NCBI RefSeq assembly: GCF_052425735.1 | Contig: NC_135763.1 | Span: forward strand, 11,718,001-11,782,000 | From: Oculina patagonica | Lineage: Eukaryota | DNA length: 64,000 nt | Direction of reading: 5' to 3' | In this document: positions 22,805-33,783 of the stretch, in pieces | How positions within the stretch are numbered: the stretch's first letter is position 1 | Layout of the letters: each line of letters starts with the position of its first letter | The notes under the pieces: model-generated | Databases searched by the model: none | The model's input: the letters and a program-made list of their open reading frames with translations, nothing else | Told to the model about the DNA's origin: nothing | Made by a program: the position numbers and the translations under genes

Positions 22805-25800
22805 TTAATCCTGCCTGCACATCACATCGATTTCACGGATGTTGTTGATTGTTGCTCGGATCTTGGATGACTGGCCTATAATCAGGGTTTCTAGGCACCT
22901 AATGAAACATGACAAAAGTTTCAAAATGAAATTCATATCGAGAAGATGTCAGAAAATAAGAAATACAGTTCTGTACTTATAAAGATTGGGAGGCGCAGTG
23001 GCTCGCTACCCCTCGAGAGAACAACAAACCAAACAAAAGGAACTACGCCCCTAGCCCCAAAAACAACAACTGATAAACTACAGAACAAGAAGCTTACGAG
23101 ATCTGCTACACTACTGGTTAAAGGTGAAGCTCACTCCAGATTGGCCATTTATTTTCTTTACGGCAGTTAAAAGGTTTTACAAAGATATTGTTTTTTGTAT
23201 TCCTTGAAGCTCTGTTTGAGCAAAATGGAGATGCACAAACAGGCTCTTGACAAACAAAAGCCACTACGAAGAAACAAGGAGTTTCGACTATTTAAATTTT
23301 CCCGCCAAACTTCAGAATGAGCTCTTTGACGTCACGCATACATTACCAGCTCCAAGATGGCGGCGTTCAGTTGTCGAGTTTTGGGAATGATTTCGTAGGG
23401 TTATAGCGCACGTTGGAGGTGAAATTTTGGTGAATAACATATCTTTGTATAAACTTGTTATTGGTGTAAAGAAAATAAATGGCCATTCTGGAGTGAACTT
23501 CTCCTTTAAGTTTCAGAATCAGGATTTAAGCGCCAGTTTATTACGCCACTAGGTTCCAAAAAGTCTTCACTCTACTTTACCAACTTTCAAAAAGACGACG
23601 ACAAAGAAACACTTCCTTAGCACTTACTTAGTTTGTTTACCGACGTCTTGCATGCTCTCCAACGCACTCATTCCTGGCGGCGTCTCCATTACACACTGTG
23701 CCCAGATTATAGCCAGATTATTCGAATTCATGAGATTCTCCTCCTGATGTTGTGATATTCTGCGAGTACAAAGTCAACTATAAATTCTCCTTGCTAACTG
23801 TTATACATTTCTTTTAATGTTAGTTCTGGGAATTCGCCGGTGGATAAAGACAGCGTCTCCTGGTTGATGAATTTCAATATTCTCGTCAACACCTCACCTT
23901 GCAAGATGAAAGACAAGTCTTTCGAGAGTGTTTCGACTTGCTCGAGGCAATCTTTGCACCAAATTGTAGAGAGCTTGCAGACGCAACTTTTCTTCACTAA
24001 ATTCTGAAAAAAAAAAAACAAGAAAACAGTTAGCCTTCCTTTAGAGAAACCACCCAGTTTGTAAATGTCAGATAAAAGAATAACGCAGCCCTTCAAGGCT
24101 GCAAGGTACCGCGTGACGGGTCCGTGTGATAACTACAAAAGAGACTAGCAAAGTAAAAGGCAATTCAACACACCTGCAGTGCGAATAAAATCCATGTAAA
24201 AATTCGCAGCGATGATGGGAACCGCCAACTGCCTGAAGAACAGTTTCAATACGCCAGCTACCACGTGTACAGTGTACTCGTCTAAATGCACATTTTCAAT
24301 TCCTGCAAAGGAATGCCGTCACCATTTAGTAAACTCCAAATGTAGGCGCGCTGTCTTAGTAATTTTAGAAAGTCTCTACTAGTAAAAGGACTGGACGAAG
24401 GCAGTCAGTTTTCTATCGGCAAGTAGCCAGGCAACATGACGTAACCTTATGACGTCAAGTTGACGCAAGTACTTGGGCTTGTTTGTGATTGGATGAAAAG
24501 AAAAAGAAATTCTTCGAGCACTTCTACACCAAGAATAGTACTTGCTCCCCCGGAGAAAACCGGCCTCCAATAAAAAATATTAATGAATGCCACTCACCTA
24601 AGGTACAAATGTCGTTCTTTAGCTTTTTAACAGCAACGTGACTCGGAGATTTTCTATAAAGGCCCTCAGTGTACAACCCTATTGAAAAATGAAAATACAT
24701 GTACATGTACAACCGAATTATATTACTAGAATGGAGCAAAAATGGCACGTGTGTGACCACGACAAGTCATACAAAAAAAACTCGACTAAAATAAAAAATA
24801 AAACAAAACGAATCTCTTTAAAAGCGGAAACACACATTTCGGTGCACAACGGTGACGCTATACAGAGCACAACAGCCAGACAAGACAAGATCACAAACGT
24901 TCTACTTGAATTCTGCCCAGGAACTATCGTTCAAAACAGCAGCCGGTTTAATCTAAAATAACGGTTAACTTGCTTGTCAAATCCTAAGTGGGAGATTTTT
25001 TATGTGTTTCCTTAGTTATTCATTTTTTTATTCACCCACACATGCACCACAATCAAACTTCACAATCGACATTGGCACCTACGAAGTGACTCACCTCTTG
25101 ACTCGATGTCTTCAATTAGTTTATCGACTAAAGGTGGAACAGAGTTTTCGTTGGACACTAGACTGGACAGATCACCGCCAAACAGTTCCGTCTGAAAAGG
25201 AAAACAAACAATTGTATTAAAACAAACTCACTAGAGAACACTGTAAAAACTAAGGACCCAATGGGTGACTACAGTGCAAGTAAAATCATCAGTGCCAGAG
25301 CTTAAGAATGAAGAGGCTGGAGAATTGCTACTCCTCCTGGATGGGATGCTAGTCCACTGCAGGGTTACCCCCCATTCAGCATTCTGTCAGGTTTGTGACA
25401 ACAAGTTTTGCGTCTGTGACACGTGATTTGTTGCTCAAAACTCTTAAACGGGAAACGGGCGATGAGAGGCCTTCTTCGGCTGAAAACTGACTGAACTTGA
25501 CTCGACTCGACTAAACTGGACTGAACTGGGGATAGCTCAGAGCAACCACGCTTGCTGCGAGAGAGGAACTTGTCACGGGTTCCAAAGTACCGTCGGATCT
25601 GCTACAACTGGAATCAGGACACAAGAACTTGGACTTCACAGGTTTATTCTTCGTTGCAATTCTTCGATGTAACTCCACGAGATGTAAATCGACTTTACAA
25701 TGATAACAGCGCTCTATATATACTAACGCTAAACTGATTGCGTCATACAAAGTGAATCGAAAGAAGGCTGAATAAAGTCAACTTACAACTCAAACAAGAT

Positions 25801-28800
25801 TGAATAGAGTCGGCATATTTGAAATCGTAAACTAACCAAACTCAATTACGGACAAAAACTAAACAAAAATGAATGTTTATTCAGCCTAGAAAGCTGCCTA
25901 AATTCAAATTGTTTTCGGTAATGGACAAAAAGAAAATCGAAATTAACTTCTCTTTATATTTTTCTTTTGAATACAACCCTAGTTTAAACAGCGACAACTT
26001 ACACGCGCGTTTATTTACTTAAGCACTAAAGCTATTTACTTTATGTGTTAAAAGTGCTGTTTGCTTACACAACTTATCTTTGCATAGTTTTCCGGTGAAG
26101 CTAACTCTAAAAGTGCAAAGGTCCTATATTATGCTAAATTTTACTTAAAGGGACTATGTCACGGCTAATTTAATTTTATGTTATAAAATATAGTCAAATA
26201 TTCGCTATGAAACTAAATGTTTGCAAAGAAATTAATTCTATGTTTCTAAATAAAAAAAACCATAGCTTCATTGCAGTCAATGTGTTTCCCGGGAGTTATA
26301 ATTTAAAATTACAAGCAGACTAAATTAACTTTGAAAACTGTTCCGCCGGACCATATTTCAAAAACCCATATCGCAATCCGTTTCAATCTTCGTCGCTTTT
26401 GGCCATCCTTGCCTTCTTTTGTATTTGCTGTGTTATTGGGATGTTCCTTCACTGTTTTAAGAGGTTATTTTGTATATTTAAACGAATTTGATGGTCATTT
26501 CCTATGCCAAAGTTTGGCTTAAATCCGTGACACGGTTCCGTTAACATTGATAACGGCTCTCCTGACAGGTTGCCACCCACAATTTGCCGTTACCCATTTA
26601 TTCTACTGGGTAAGGAGAGGCATTGTGTGAGTAAAAGGTCTTGCCCAAGAACACAATGCAGTGTTTCCAGCCAGTGTTTGAACACGGCCCTCTCGATGCG
26701 AAATCCAAGTAAAATCATTGGGTCACTGCGCTTCTTTTCTCCAAAAATAATAGCTGTGGAACAATACAATACAATACTTTAATTTGACACTCCCCTTACG
26801 GGGCTTTTCAGTGACAATAGGTCCACATCAACGTAGGTCCACATCAAGTTAAAGCTTCGTTTTACAGACTGTCGTTTGTGCTAAAATTTGTTTTTTAGTA
26901 CTGAAGGATAACAGAACGGAAGTATCTATAGTGAGTTCTTACCTTTCCTTTTGAGTTGTTTGTTCCTTTGCGACAAATGTTCTTGGACTTGGCGTGACAC
27001 TTCTTGTGACAAGTGAATCTGCACTCTGCAAAGAAGCACATCGAAACAGCATTGAGGATGAAATTGCATGCTTATCGCTTCCGGGGCTGGGAACAGTATG
27101 CTCTTTTGGAACAAAATTAAATGAAGTAATTAACTTGACAGAAATGGGTTTAAGACGCCGGCTGCCTGCTAATTAAAGGTGCTATGTCACGCAATTTTAG
27201 GCAATTTCAGCATTGGCCAACTGGTCATAGAATTAACTGAAATACCACACTAACGGCTTAAAGCTGTAGAAGAACTCAAAAGAAACACAGAAAGGCCAAG
27301 AAAGGGCATGGATGGGCAAAATTCGAGAAGATTAAAACGGATTGCGTTCGGGCAAACTTGAAAAACGTCGGGCCGACTTTGTTCAAGTTTATCTCAATTT
27401 GAATGAAAGTGTCATTAACAATGCTCGAAAATCGTTCTTGTTTGTTACGAAGCCGTGATTTTACCAATCAAAGAATTTTGCTCTGCCAATTTGAAGTTTA
27501 GAGCTCCTAATTAGCAAAAATTAATAGAATTACATAAAATACCGCGACCTAGCCCCTTTAAAGATAAGGTTACGTTTGCATCAGGCTTAAGTGTCACAAA
27601 CCACCGAAGCTTATCCCGTAGAACGAAGTGATTAGGAGTATTTCTACACTCCCCTGAATGGAATGCTAGTCCAGCCTCTTGTTACCCCAGCACTCATTTC
27701 GTCGATACCCCATTATAAACCTGGGTGGAGCGAGGCACTGCGAGAGTAAAGTTTCTTGTCCAAGAACACTATAATACCAGGAAACACTCCTCCTCCTTTT
27801 ATTTAGAAAAGATAAGATTGGAGAGTTTAATTGTAAGTTCACGAATTTAGTCCTCATATGTTCTGTGTACTTTAATTATCTTTATACGATTTTTTTTGTA
27901 TAAACAGGACCCACTTTGATAGCAGTTTTTATAACTGAGATTCTCACCCTGTAAAAGAAGGGTAAAGAACACAATACATTGACTCCAAGCTGAGTTCGAA
28001 CTACCAGGTTGATCAAAGCAACTAATCCACTGAGGGTCATAAACGTGAAGTTTGATTTCAGTTTTTTAACTTTTCAGTTTTTTTTTACAACAACAACAAC
28101 AACATTTGAGCTTTATTTGTATGACCATAAAACATTACAGTATTGCAAAAGCATAAGGTGATATATTATAGTAATAATTACAATAAAAAGTCATTGAACA
28201 AAACTAATCAAATAATCAGTGATCAAGAATTTGATAATAATTTGTCTCTCATTTCAATACATACTAGTTATGCAACGCTTTCGAGTGGTATACTATGGAA
28301 TATCCAGCGAGTCACTTGTATTTTCTCGGTATACACACGAGCCTTTAGGCTCGTGTGTATATTATACCATGCCATAGAAAATACGCTCTTTTATACCATG
28401 CCATAGAAAATACGCTCACTAAATTTCATCGAGAATAAGATCGCAGCGCACGATGGGAAGGTTGGGTTGAATACCGTCGAATATACAACGGCTTTCCTGT
28501 ATTCTGATTGACTGTATTTTCTATTGCATGGTATAAAGGACGATATAAACTGCACTAATTGCATATTAATATAATAGTCAGTGGAGTTCATTAATTGCAC
28601 AATCAAGGTTTAAATTGATAACTTCTGGGGATTCGAAATTATATGATCTATTTTACTGAAAAAGATGTCTCTAATTGATGAATATCTTGGACAATGAAAA
28701 AGAAAATGGGTTTCATCTTCAACATTATGCACACAAATAGTGCAAAGTCTGTCACTTCTAGGGATATTGTTATATCTTCCTGCTTCAATTAGGAGTTTGT

Positions 28801-28989
28801 GATTACTTATTGTCTCTGTCCTCCAATTTTGACATCGACTATTCTCAAACTCTTCAAAACATAAGCAATAAGCAATGAATTACCTTGACAGACAAATCCT
28901 TTCTTGAGTCTCCTGATAAACCCTCCACAATGCTCGCAAAATGTTGGATTACTAAACTGTGTCGTGGAAAACTTATGGCCGTTAAACAC
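22805..28989 (-). CDS. Duplicated MYO9 C1-RhoGAP cassette (8 exons, 275 codons, open, new stop); functional alternative tail/new gene or young pseudogene
   Basis: Exons 28989-28884, 27025-26943, 25191-25095, 24678-24598, 24302-24174, 24003-23898, 23759-23628 and 22898-22805. The first seven have the same lengths as the 43753-39804 exons, all splice sites are intact and the arginine finger is kept. Ends IREIDVMCRQD* after a ~2.2 kb deletion. No own start exon found. Confidence 0.6.
23122..23505. mobile_element. Kolobok-like MITE (internally deleted copy)
   Basis: TTAA|aggtgaagctcactccagattggccatttattttcttta ... taaagaaaataaatggccattctggagtgaacttctcct|TTAA. Confidence 0.75.
25394..26567 (+). 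mobile_element. Solo LTR (Gypsy-like) inserted in a SINE, carrying a nested Kolobok-like MITE
   Basis: Starts TGTGACA and ends CCTGACA, 4-bp target duplication ggtt (25390-25393 / 26568-26571), TATA-like ctctatatata at ~25712 and AATAAA at ~25771. Copy B has the uninterrupted SINE at ~42540. Confidence 0.7.
26149..26540. mobile_element. Kolobok-like MITE nested in the solo LTR
   Basis: TTAA|agggactatgtcacgg ... ccgtgacacggttccg|TTAA. Confidence 0.7.
27177..27557. mobile_element. Kolobok-like MITE; related decayed copies at ~47215-47445, ~40145-40570 and from ~60933
   Basis: TTAA|aggtgctatgtcacgcaatttt ... aaaataccgcgacctagcccct|TTAA. Confidence 0.7.
28260..28536. mobile_element. Hairpin-containing repeat element
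   Basis: tatacacacgagcctttaggctcgtgtgtata hairpin plus ttataccatgccatagaaaatac (duplicated in tandem) / gtattttctattgcatggtataa inverted pair. Confidence 0.55.
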
Positions 28990-29025
28990 CTGCAAAGAAA
29001 AAACCTACTTTTAAGCAATGCATTT

Positions 29026-31150
29026 TCAAAAAGTTATAACTTTCTATACAGATATTGACACGAAATGCAACTTACACAAGCACGCACATGACTAAGTGTG
29101 CTACCCATCGCAAGTATAAAGGAGATGTCTATCGCAATCTATTAATTTTACAGTGATATTCTTAAGGACTGCACAGTTATTTATCGATATTAAGCTACAA
29201 ATTACATAACCATAGTAGGTTAACCGGAAGTGGGGTACTTTCCAAGCTACAAATTACATTACCATGGTAGGTAAACCGGAAGTGGGGTACTTTCGGCCAG
29301 TGTCGAGGTGTTATTATTATGTGCCTTAATAAATCGAAAATTGTTGTTGCGATAGACATCTCCTTACTTGTGATGGGGGTAGCACATTTAGTTATGTGCT
29401 CGCTTGTTTAATAGTTGCATTTCGTGTCAATGTCTGCAAAGAAAGTTATAAAACTTTTTGAAAACCGCGTATGGTGAGTGAAACGTTAAGCTGGCCATAT
29501 GCTGTTGGCCCTTATCTCGCGATGCAACGTTTTTCGTTGCAAGAGTCGGTCGGAGTCAAAAGTTATTAAACCACAAAATCGGCATCCGCTACTTCCGTAT
29601 AGCAGGACCGGAAGTAGTCATTTCCGGACATATCACCAGTGTTGTTATGTACCAAAATGGATCGATAACTGTTGCTGCGATGGAGATCTCCTCCCTTGCG
29701 ATGAATAGTACACCTAGTCATGTGCTCGCTTGTTTAGTTGCATTTCATTTCAATGTCTGCAAAGAAAGTTATAACTTTTTGAAAACCGCATGTGGTGAGT
29801 GAAACGTTAAGCTGGCCATATGCTGTTGGCTGATATATAATTGACGTTTGTGCCGATGGCCTGTTGGTGGGTTGCGATGAATAAAAGACCTTATTAGCTA
29901 ACAATACATACTGTTAATTTAACAGTGATATTTTTAAGGAGTGTTAAGTTATTAAGCTACAAACTACATCACTATAGTATCGGGACCATAGTAGCTGAAC
30001 CGGAAGTTGGATACTTTTGACCAGTGTCAAGGTGTTATTATGTCCCTTAATAATTCGATAATTGTTGTTGCGATAGATATATCCTCACTTGCGATGGGTA
30101 GCACACTTAGTTATGTGCGTGCATGTGTATGTTGCATTTCGTGTCAATATCTGTATAGAAAGTTATAACTTTTTGAAAATGGCAAGTGGCGAGTCAAACG
30201 TAATGGCGGCCGTACTTTGTTGGCTTATATGTATTTGAGGAACGTTGCGATGATCTTGCAGGTGATTGCAATGAGTGATACACCTTGTTATCTTGCGATG
30301 TTGAGTTTTTCGGTATAATTCTTGGTCTAAGTCAAAAGTTATTAAACCACAAAATCGGCATCCGGGCTGCAGAACCGGAAGTAGTCTTTTCAAGTAGTCA
30401 TTTCCTGTTTCATCTTCATGAAGTAGTCTGGAGAACTTCGCTTCGATACACTAAATGAATTTCTTCAGTTTCTGTAAGAAATTTTGCGGCGGTTATAGGT
30501 CGAAATTCAAGCAACTTACTGCAAAATCAAAAATTATGTTGCGTGTGTCATTACGTGTATAAAGCATTCGTGTACAAATTCTTCGTGTTTCCAAATATGG
30601 TATTTAAAAATCACTATTTAGCAAAATGAATATTCAAACGCTGTGCACGCGCGTAACACGTTCGGCAAGCCTTATGGGTTTCTGCTGATATATAATTGAC
30701 ATTTCATTGTGGCGATGGCCTGTTGGTGGGTTGCGATAAATTGAAGACCGTATTAGCTTATTTTGCAGTGATATTTTTAATGAGTGGAAAGTTATTAAGC
30801 CACAAAGTCGATTACCGGATTTGGTAAACCGGAAGTGGGTTTCTGTGGGCCCGGAGTACCGGTGTCGTTTTGTTAAAACTGCTGTTGCGATGGATATTCT
30901 GAAAAATGCGATGTATAGTACACCTAGTTGTGTGCCTGTTTCTTTATTTTTGTTTAATTTCATTGCCGGTATAAAAAGTTATAACGTTTTGAAAATGGCA
31001 CATCGTTGGGTAATACTTCGTAAGCTGATATACCTTGAGCATGTGTTGCGATCGGCGAGTGAAATATTGCGATGGCTACAGCAACGAGGGTAGCATCACT
31101 CTTGGAAAGAACCGAATTTTTAACCTAATTTTCTCAAGTTATAACGCAAC
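29026..31150. repeat. Degenerate tandem/inverted repeat block at the duplication junction
   Basis: 4-5 related ~300-400-bp units sharing aaagttattaagc..caaa, accggaagt, ttgcgat and aaagttataactttttgaaaa. 29026-29115 is the reverse complement of ~30087-30178. Confidence 0.75.
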
Positions 31151-32070
31151 AAACTTCGCAAACTTTGCACAATGAAAAAACGTGACAAGAAAAGCTATTT
31201 TTAAAAACAAATGCAAAAATAACATTTTGTTTTTGTTCTAGCACTTTGTTTGCTGTATCTGAATAAGGAAAATGCCTGTCAATTCTTTTTTTTTTTCGAA
31301 GAATGGAAGTTTAGATATCAAATGGGAAATCGGTAACCGGTAACCGGTAACCAGATTGCAACTGGTGATTAATCATTTTTTCGTCATCCAGGCTCTGTTG
31401 TTGTGCGAGGTGGTCACGTGACGTGTTCGCATCAAAAGTTTTCACAACTGGCTAATATGTCGGTAAAGATTGAAACCCAGTGTTTCACTACTAGGAATTC
31501 TGAGAACGCTTTGGTAACAAGTATGACTCATGATTGGTCGACCAATAACGCAACCTTCGACCAATCATAGCTAAGAAATACTAGTGCCGAAGTTTGCTGC
31601 TCAGCATGTTTGCTCGTACAATCGTCCAATATATGAACCCAGAGGAAAAAATCTGAAAATCGAATGGTTCGAAAAACATTTCCGCAAAATCTTGTCGCAA
31701 ATAGTGAGACACCTCCAGAAGTATTCCCATAGTGCTCTTTGAGGACAACCTTAAGGTCAACTGGTTTTAAAAAAAAGACCTTACTGTGAAATTTGACTGT
31801 CCGTCTGTACTGTGTTTATCAAGCGCTCTTAATGAAATTCTCAGAGCTAACATTTATTGGAAAGAAAGACGTTGTTAGGGAGAATTTCTAGTTTTAAACT
31901 GTGAACTGAAATCAGTCTTAAAAGAGAGCGAGTTGTCTTTTTTAACATACTTAACTTAGGACCTGTAAAAGTGCTTTCAAGTTCTTTGTCTCGTTTGGTT
32001 TGTTAACATGACTCCCGTGTTTGGTTTTCTTATTTTTAAACATTTCTTTTTTTTTGCCTGATATCTGCAG

Positions 32071-33783
32071 GGTCCTAAAACTAACATGACCAAACACCTT
32101 CAGGAGAACTCAGAGGAACATTTACAGCTGGCATTGGAGGTGATCAAACAACAGAGGACTGAGATGGGAATACAGCGAGGCCGGCTAAGAAAACAAGAGG
32201 AGAATATCACTCAGCTTATGGAAAGTGTCAGCAAGTTGACGGCACTTTGCGAAGAAACACTCAAAAGTAACGCGGAGCAGGAGAAAACCATCAATCGTTT
32301 GTCGGAACAAGTAAAAGAGCAGAAGAAACATCAATCGAAACACGAGAAGGAACTGAGGCAAAGAATTACCGAGCTGGAAAAACGGGGACCAAAAAATGCC
32401 CCAAAACGGTTTTTTTCGTTACCTGGGACTGAACGGTTACAGGGAACTTGTCTGGCGAATTTCCAGCTTCTCCCGAAGATTGCAGCGAGTTCAGTCTATT
32501 TCAGTTCAGTCTAGCTCAGTTCAGTTCAGTGAACCATTCTATACCTCGGCGTTCGGTTACAAAGTCGTAGTCTGGGCGTACCTTAATGGGAGAGGCAAAG
32601 AAGCGGGGACCTGTTTGTATTTGTACGCATGCGTCATGTCTGGGGAGTATGACGCAATACTTCAATGGCCAATCAAACCGCACTACACGTTCAGCTTGCT
32701 GGATCAAAACCCGAACTGTGAAGCAAGGAAGGACAACAGATCACTACTAAGTAAACCACCATAGCCAGTCATTGCGTCTGTTTCTTACACAAACATAACT
32801 ATTAGGATTTTTTTTTTACCATCTAGCCAGTAAACCCTCTAGTCAGTCAGTCTTATGGATGGTTTTCTGCACTTTCGACCTTCGTCTGCTCAGTCTGTGT
32901 GTTCAGACCTGTCACGTGCTTATGCACATGTCAGGCTGTTTCACTCAGCAGTTTATTCGGATCGTTTGTTTTTGCAGTCTTCATCCGTTACTTACATAAA
33001 CAGTAAAAGCCGAAATATTAAAACCTACTGAGTTCCGAAACTTTTTGGTTTTAATATCACAAATGGCATCCCACAGTGTTGGAACTATTCCTTCGCTTCA
33101 AAAAATCAAAAACAGTTTGAAACGTGGTTTAGAGAGATTTACCCTGATTTGGCTTTTAGTTTTATTTATACGTTACAATACGGATAAAAGATCAATGTAA
33201 CGTCTTCCCGCGCGCGCTTATCCCCTTTTTTTCTAGCTTACTCTTCGCGAAATAATTATCTCTCTAAGGGGTCTGTCACTGTGCCCCTGACGAGAATGGC
33301 AGACTTTCTGAGCTTTCATGACAATCTTCTCCGATCCAGGAAAACTTATTTGTGAGCTCACTATTATAATTTCTTCAATTTAAATAACAATGGTAATGTA
33401 CCTAAGCGATAAAGTTAAATAGGGATAACAGGTCACTACTAAGTAAACCACCATAGCCACTCATTGCGTCGGTTACTTACACAAATATAACTATTAGGAC
33501 TTTTTTCTTTACCATCTAGTCAGTAAACCCTCTAGTCAGTCAGTCTTATGGATGGTTTTCTGCACTTTCGACCTTCGTCTGCTTAGTCTGCTTAGTCTGT
33601 TTGTTCAGACCTTTCAAGCGCGATGACGTCAGAAGGAAAGGGATTGATAGGCCTGGTCGGGATGAGAGAGCAATCATTGTTGGATTTGACGATTTCATTA
33701 AACACGAAGAACTCGAAGCTGGGAACTTTCTTGTGGATGACACCCTATTCATCCGAGTTCTCGTAGACATGCCTGAATCATAG
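32071..33783 (+). pseudogene. Disrupted duplicate of the TRAF terminal exon
   Basis: Near-identical to 18208-19062 with an intact acceptor (ctgcag|GGT). Carries a +1 frameshift at ~32391-32397, a (TTCAG)n replacement at ~32497-32528, and an ~880-bp insertion at ~32730-33612 that removes ~27 bp of the MATH domain. Confidence 0.85.
32730..33612. mobile_element. Insertion with ~180-bp direct terminal repeats inside the TRAF pseudo-exon
   Basis: ~32730-32910 and ~33424-33612 are direct repeats (tcactactaagtaaaccaccatagcc...gttcagacct) around a ~510-bp non-coding core. Confidence 0.7.

Follow-up and report, generated by a model that had tools for sequence, protein, structure and literature searches.

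A second copy of the exons that encode the C1 and RhoGAP domains of the myosin gene MYO9 lies downstream of that gene, in the same orientation, in a stretch of 64,000 nucleotides of the coral Oculina patagonica (NC_135763.1, positions 11,718,001 to 11,782,000; hereafter the window). This copy of eight exons, cassette A, is a true paralogue of the exons within the gene. It has not been dead since birth, and it is not constrained like its parent. We regard it, with moderate confidence, as a recently stranded relic: it is beheaded and clipped at its tail, it has taken random hits on invariant residues, its dead twin has the same ratio of replacing to silent change (dN/dS, omega), and spliced RNA of it was not found in the runs examined. 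That cassette A is a living module, as an alternative MYO9 tail or as a separate gene, is a less probable reading, within which the alternative tail is likelier than the separate gene.

The duplicated MYO9-TRAF block

Comparison of the window with itself displays a tandem duplication of about 12 kb (Table 1), whose copies A and B are collinear, have the same orientation, and are 73–96% identical depending on the block. MYO9 on the minus strand and a TRAF gene on the plus strand converge here, and each copy comprises the MYO9 C1-RhoGAP exons together with the last TRAF exon, which encodes the MATH domain. The upstream MYO9 exons are continuous with copy B, the upstream TRAF sequence with copy A. 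Upstream of the first exon of cassette A (A-E1) the homology of the two copies stops after 43 nt; the MYO9 exons upstream of C1 are single-copy in the genome, copy A is devoid of all of them, and no third copy of the cassette is found in the genome.

The ancestral layout is displayed by L026, a coral contig from ENA representing a single-copy relative, in which the MYO9 tail faces one intact TRAF exon of 279 amino acids. L026 is collinear with copy B on the MYO9 side and with copy A on the TRAF side, and Desmophyllum pertusum likewise has one copy. Cassette A arose after the split from these single-copy relatives. In D. pertusum (L025, GCA_029204205.1) the reading frame of the MYO9 tail is interrupted by stops in E5 and the last exon (12367–12498, 15343–15456), and the annotation splits the tail into small genes; both are probably errors of assembly or annotation. 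A literature search for a duplicated MYO9 tail in corals found nothing.

An artefact of assembly, for which the repeat-rich spacer between the copies might speak, is a very improbable source of this arrangement. Copies A and B differ by 12% and by many indels, and independent DNA runs contain the cassette with a share of 0.44–0.49 (0.77 for E5-E6). In X19, a DNA run of a close relative under another organism label, cassette A is present at about 99% identity, and contigs of this run cover the A-specific introns and confirm the junction of A-E1 with the spacer (29021–29233; variant at 29002). The non-exonic sequence aligned between A and B shows a K80 (Kimura two-parameter) distance of 0.13 and 76 gap openings in 5.2 kb. 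Growth of the introns did not occur on the A side only, since copy B has insertions of its own in introns 4 and 5 (41379–41622 and ~40807–41128), which are absent from A, L009 and L026.

Over 807 aligned nucleotides the exons of A and B differ at 45 nucleotides and 15 residues, with no indel and no stop. The method of Nei and Gojobori counts 29 silent and 16 replacing changes, in good agreement with an earlier hand count of about 28 synonymous and about 15 amino acid-changing codons, and yields a dS of 0.188, a dN of 0.026 and an omega of 0.137.

Cassette A has the architecture of the tail of class IX myosins (MYO9A, MYO9B), that is a C1 domain and, behind it, a Rho-specific RhoGAP domain, and its exon structure is that of the in-gene copy. 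Its residues are 94% identical with the parent, 85–88% with the MYO9 tails of other corals and about 45% with mollusc MYO9, and its whole RhoGAP domain aligns with MYO9 tails without a gap. Pfam analysis of the exon peptides displays C1_1 (PF00130) in A-E1 (E = 3e-7) and RhoGAP (PF00620) with its positions 47–147 across E5, E6 and E7. The C1 domain retains its eight zinc ligands (H-x12-C-x2-C-x12-C-x2-C-x4-H-x2-C-x7-C), and A-E4 the predicted catalytic arginine finger (GLYRKS). In contrast to a class IX myosin gene, however, no exons for motor, IQ motifs or upstream tail adjoin cassette A, and its coiled-coil and C-terminal motif are deleted. Moreover, two loop residues of the MYO9 C1 domain, the isoleucine before PTFC and the tryptophan of the IWG loop, which are invariant in every MYO9 examined from corals to molluscs, are changed in A only (I14N and W26R).

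With chimaerins, which combine C1 with a RacGAP domain, cassette A shares the layout of a C1 domain directly before RhoGAP. This likeness is architectural only: the nearest relatives of the cassette are MYO9 tails, it is not a chimaerin orthologue, and the locus yielded neither a promoter nor a start codon or N-terminal region. A search of the PDB with the 42-residue peptide of E5 returned weak RhoGAP matches, with ARHGAP12 as the best (1.4e-4) and N-chimaerin and MYO9B among seven, and at such scores a subfamily is not assignable.

Selection on the cassette A lineage and on its TRAF twin

A codon branch model on the tree ((A,B),L026,L027) yields an omega of 0.21 for the A branch, 0.045 for the parent (B) branch and 0.07 elsewhere. 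An omega of 1 on the A branch is rejected (likelihood ratio test statistic 14.6, P = 1e-4), and with other outgroups the estimate for A is 0.19 (P = 4e-5). Hence cassette A was not dead from birth. Simulation of copies that are neutral since birth, at the measured substitution and indel rates, gave the same answer: 0 of 4000 kept both the frame and the 30 splice-site letters intact. The initial annotation, which had argued from its hand count that the copy was not dead since birth and had proposed a branch-specific dN/dS with an outgroup as a check, was right in this respect, as the value for A is not near 1.

A cassette dead since the duplication, and intact by chance or through gene conversion from the parent, would have been stranded at once provided that the event was no more than a tandem duplication of 12 kb; in view of the rejected neutral omega and of the simulations this scenario is scarcely credible. 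Gene conversion was also considered as a cause of the low omega and was rejected. The exon dS of 0.19 is not below the intron divergence of 0.13, so that recent conversion has not homogenised the exons, and conversion would not lower the omega of the acceptor branch.

The differences between A and B were polarised with L026, L023 and L009 as outgroups. Codon 167 was resolved by hand (CTT to TTT, replacing, on A; CTT to CTA, silent, on B), and K59N was placed on A from the proteins, as every outgroup has Lys or Arg at this position. By this procedure the A lineage has 14 replacing and 14 silent changes and the B lineage 2 and 9, respectively, a sevenfold number of replacements on A; a relative-rate test is significant for the replacements (P = 0.004), and silent changes are alike in both lineages. 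The residues specific to A are E1V, I14N, W26R, G27R, E29K, Q50K, K59N, Q90E, N109H, D156N, L167F, K183R and A215N. Ten of 12 A replacements fall on positions that are invariant among the outgroups, at a background share of such positions of 0.81, whereas functional lineages place about half of their changes there (14 of 27 in L027 and 12 of 24 in O1; both P ~1e-5 against background). For the TRAF exon of copy B (TRAF-B) the figure is 11 of 13, and the pooled stranded copies differ from the functional lineages in this share (P = 0.008). The replacements in cassette A fall as unselected hits would, irrespective of conservation.

Regarding the reach of these comparisons, the coral transcripts P0158 and P0176, retrieved with an alignment of four exons, have saturated silent sites (dS > 1.3), and L009, a contig of 1 kb from a nearer relative, has a mosaic sequence at equal distance from both copies and is ambiguous as an orthologue. 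The TRAF paralogues of the same genome are 32–43% identical and too distant to polarise changes. A search with both types of E1 for an A-type open reading frame in other species gave three frames, all of the B type; exact matches to ten open reading frames of the window were absent from the sequence collection searched; and a protein search seeded with Octopus returned molluscs and other bilaterians only among its best 120 matches.

The event that stranded cassette A left a second fragment, which serves as a control. The TRAF exon of copy B is clearly broken and dead today, and yet it bears a signature nearly that of cassette A. Of its lesions (Table 1), the replaced segment is microsatellite-like, and the 879-nt insert brings an immediate stop. 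Inside this insert there is a local direct repeat (32731–32914 and 33423–33616, 89% identity, ~690 nt apart). The TRAF-B lineage has 12 replacing and 12 silent changes, the intact TRAF copy 4 and 11, respectively. On the TRAF-B branch omega is 0.34, and an omega of 1 is rejected (P = 0.03). As this broken twin is sub-neutral too, the low omega of cassette A does not show a present function, and the constraint may be historical, a caveat already raised in the initial annotation. One event has thus left two stranded fragments, one broken and one open, both with a sub-neutral omega, and the lesson is that an open frame together with a low dN/dS is no proof of present function.

A model of constraint like that of the parent followed by neutrality fits the counts for cassette A with a neutral phase of about 0.15–0.25 of the branch. 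Intact frame and splice sites survive with a probability of 0.11–0.24 when this phase is 0.15–0.25, and of 0.05–0.08 when it is 0.28; hence the intactness of the cassette is unremarkable. If the 3' deletion described below is counted as a lesion, A has suffered one event and TRAF-B three, and A is not clearly better preserved.

Based on these data, we hypothesize that the MYO9 tail and the TRAF tail belonged to one block duplicated in tandem, of which cassette A is a stranded 3' module. Through most of the time after the duplication both stranded copies would have experienced purifying selection, and for A this constraint would have lapsed for about the last fifth of the branch. In one possible history duplication of the whole block yielded two gene pairs, each complete, and MYO9-A and TRAF-B were subsequently beheaded together by a single deletion. 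In another, the duplication was a simple one of 12 kb, and the stranded ends served for a while as distal alternative last modules via read-through. The present structure fits both histories alike and does not tell them apart. Today cassette A would most likely be a silent relic that awaits its first frame-breaking hit, and not a working tail or gene.

Transcripts, lost ends and a possible living module

None of the listed runs with the cassette is registered as RNA, and 14 runs guessed to be RNA contain 0.07–0.10 of the cassette words. Three RNA-like runs (X26, X4 and X1) were compared with positions 23600–29599 at 96% likeness, and no A-specific spliced contig was found in them. Depth in these runs falls on intronic repeats; it is zero over A-E5, E6 and E7, save for a 30-nt repeat piece (23804–23834), and at most 1.2 over A-E1. 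The sole A-specific contig that touches an exon is unspliced (24944–25107, depth 2.8). For words of E5-intron-E6 a spliced mRNA of A would be expected to give 0.47 and the parent mRNA 0.05, and the RNA-like runs reach at most 0.15. X1 contains complementary DNA, in that one of its contigs spans the junction of E4 and E5, but the E5 letters are those of the parent (T and not A at the seventh position). Among the rows listed for the three runs there is no joint or loose end at 28989. The copy-specific junctions to which the initial annotation had pointed were not seen in these runs, the one junction contig being of the B type. We take the RNA result as negative evidence of moderate weight.

At 22826 the homology breaks, as the matching sequence jumps from 38838 to 36634 of copy B, and 2.2 kb are deleted from A. 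This stretch is present in L026; it is hence ancestral and was lost by A. The deletion cost cassette A its last ~135 codons, among them the coiled-coil region and a strongly conserved C-terminal motif encoded in E11, and the reading frame ends six codons past the break on a TAA, the six codons and the stop both being derived from the 3' untranslated region of the parent. At the other end, the C1 exons of cassette A are devoid of an ATG. Upstream of A-E1 a search for a first exon or start gave only short candidates from ATG to GT at chance level (e.g. 29108–29076), and the spacer has neither a CpG island nor a conserved element.

Cassette A may still be reached from MYO9 itself. In such a case transcription would read through the proximal poly(A) site, the donor at 45963 would be joined to the acceptor at 28989, and the product would be a myosin IX that has a RhoGAP domain and a C1 loop of altered charge and is devoid of coiled-coil and C-terminal motif. 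In favor of such a distal alternative tail, the acceptor of A-E1 is intact with a polypyrimidine tract, and its phase 0 matches that of the 45963 donor (gtaagt), as had been proposed from the sequence at the outset; with its own stop and poly(A) signals the cassette is structurally usable as a terminal module. The sub-neutral omega of the A branch, the cluster of replacements in E1, and the lack of replacing differences and exon indels with respect to X19 (see below) point in the same direction. On the other hand, splicing would have to pass over the proximal acceptor together with 11 proximal exons, the three RNA-like runs yield no A-type exon contig or junction, the dead TRAF twin has a like omega, and invariant residues have been replaced at random. 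We consider an alternative tail unlikely on balance, though not negligible.

A motorless C1-RhoGAP protein of chimaerin-like layout, expressed from a promoter of its own, appears more doubtful still and is in our view improbable. It shares with the alternative tail the evidence for constraint, and it would have the same stop and poly(A) signals at its disposal; however, it meets with C1 exons that lack an ATG, with upstream candidates at chance level in a spacer without CpG island or conserved element, and with RNA-like contigs that cover E1 and its 5' flank at trace depth at most. The claim of the initial annotation that cassette A looks alive, as alternative tail or motorless gene, is thus upheld in part. 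Structure and sub-neutral omega agree with it; the missing spliced contig, the loss of ~135 codons, and the fact that 14 of the 16 replacements occurred on A do not.

Measured against an unprocessed pseudogene, or stranded exons of a partial tandem duplication, cassette A is alike in lacking its 5' end, in its 3' truncation, in accelerated residue change that is random with respect to conservation, and in its broken sister fragment; of a mature transcript, the three RNA-like runs, stored as contigs, showed none. It is unlike such a pseudogene in that its eight exons contain no stop, frameshift or lost splice site, in that its omega is well below 1, and in that it has taken no replacing change since the split from a close relative.

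Several observations weigh against a relic. Cassette A has AG at 8 of 8 acceptors and GT at donors 1–7, so that none of 30 splice-site letters is lost, and its frame is free of stops and frameshifts over 807 nt. In this respect the initial description of eight exons with conserved splice sites, phases, open frame and arginine finger holds, except that A-E8 is not a whole exon: it is cut at 22826 and has no donor of its own. What remained after the deletion is a neat last exon, complete with stop codon and poly(A) signals. E1 contains a cluster of five of the 13 replaced residues (P = 0.02), in better agreement with a domain-specific adaptation or episode than with uniform decay. The RNA-like runs are contigs of which the kind of library is only guessed, and they show presence, not absence.

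The comparison with X19 indicates constraint during the latest period, albeit with small numbers and from contigs. Within 1,055 nt of unique intron sequence of A (23600–25200), 10 substitutions and 3 indels separate X19 from the window. Over the 545 nt of exons E3-E7 they differ only at 23633, 24253 and 25168, all silent; since X19 has the parent letter at these three sites, they look like recent changes of the window lineage. Under neutrality, three silent differences out of three have P = 0.01, and the absence of a replacing difference, given the events of the neutral class, has P = 0.018. The latter value rises to 0.08 if a cluster of six differences in the intron (24908–25078) is set aside. 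In this part of A intron 3 X19 has six substitutions and one insertion in 170 nt, a density several times that of the rest of the cassette, and X1 matches the window exactly; it may be a divergent haplotype block.

Taken together, the absent frame-breaking hit, the usable terminal exon and the silent-only recent differences make up a case for life that we hold to be tentative. In its fullest form, which we likewise consider possible but not probable, the C1 loop would have been re-charged after the duplication (FIWGLEKG to FIRRLKKG) and a capping-protein-like C-terminal motif shed, with purifying selection acting since, as the silent-only differences from the close relative would indicate. If cassette A is alive, a new RhoGAP signalling module would have been caught being born from the tail of a motor protein, with its C1 domain altered and an interaction motif lost; a relic would count among the ordinary by-products of tandem duplication.

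Feature coordinates and further observations

Table 1. Positions, strand and content of the features of the duplicated block, numbered from the first letter of the window.
Feature	Positions	Strand	Content	Basis or context
Copy A of the ~12 kb duplication	17179–29032		Intact TRAF last exon and stranded MYO9 tail cassette	Collinear self-alignment
Copy B	31403–43798		TRAF pseudo-exon (broken) and in-gene MYO9 tail exons	Self-alignment; collinear with single-copy relative L026
Spacer A/B	29033–31402		~2.4 kb	Repeat-rich; not a CpG island; no L026 match
A-E1	28989–28884	-	First half of C1 domain	Phase-0 AG acceptor; replacements E1V, I14N, W26R, G27R, E29K
A-E2	27025–26943	-	Second half of C1 domain
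A-E3	25191–25095	-	Linker and RhoGAP start
A-E4	24678–24598	-	RhoGAP with arginine finger GLYRKS
A-E5	24302–24174	-	RhoGAP	PF00620, E = 6e-8
A-E6	24003–23898	-	RhoGAP
A-E7	23759–23628	-	RhoGAP end
A-E8	22898–22805	-	Cut mid-exon at 22826; then six read-through codons (VMCRQD) and TAA (22807–22805)
Copy B (parent) E1-E4	43753–43648, 42942–42860, 42401–42305, 41980–41900	-
Copy B (parent) E5-E8	41321–41193, 40706–40601, 39935–39804, 38910–38838	-		B-E8 continues past 38838
B stretch missing from A	36635–38837	-	Rest of E8 (to 38784), E9 38430–38338, E10 37659–~37495, E11 ~36945–36836, natural stop	tblastn with P0158/P0176
Two overlapping AATAAA signals	22173–22182 (start 22182, 22178)	-	~620 nt beyond A stop	Homologous to B 35771/35767
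MYO9 exon upstream of B-E1	46010–45963	-	Phase-0 gtaagt donor	Natural B-E1 partner; candidate donor for A-E1 splice
TRAF last exon, intact copy	18223–19062	+	279 amino acids, MATH domain	Orthologous 279-amino acid open reading frame in L026
TRAF pseudo-exon, stranded twin	32086–33783	+	+1 frameshift at 32391; segment ~32497–32526 replaced; 28 nt replaced by 879 nt (32734–33612)

Between the MYO9 exon at 46010–45963 and B-E1 there is a minus-strand open reading frame of 33 codons that begins with ATG (45079–45177; MAFATTSG...IESNL) and ends in phase 0 at a gtatgt donor. The region around it is 65–73% conserved with L023 and L026. It could be an alternative first exon of a short C1-RhoGAP isoform of the parent gene.

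Doubled domains are also displayed by gene models of other organisms. P0016 (1780 amino acids), P0015, P0034 and P0017 contain two consecutive C1-RhoGAP or RhoGAP segments (1186–1350 and 1354–1596 in P0016), which reflect either recurrent tandem duplication of this cassette in other genomes or models that run through duplicates. In P0001, a predicted RhoGAP protein of 1352 amino acids, an exon-sized unit of 40 residues (IQNNTDIHVLTGSLKLFFRELKEPLIPCAIFDRILAACL) is tandemly repeated about ten times, by either exon amplification or an artefact of assembly.

Elsewhere in the window, a cluster of three tRNA-like elements at 4191–4940 includes Rfam tRNA matches at 4233–4305, 4541–4610 and 4819–4902. 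Copies related to this cluster and resembling short interspersed elements are located in MYO9 introns at 26581–26700, 27604–27770, 42533–42620 and 50103–50212, and at 8712–8946 of L026.

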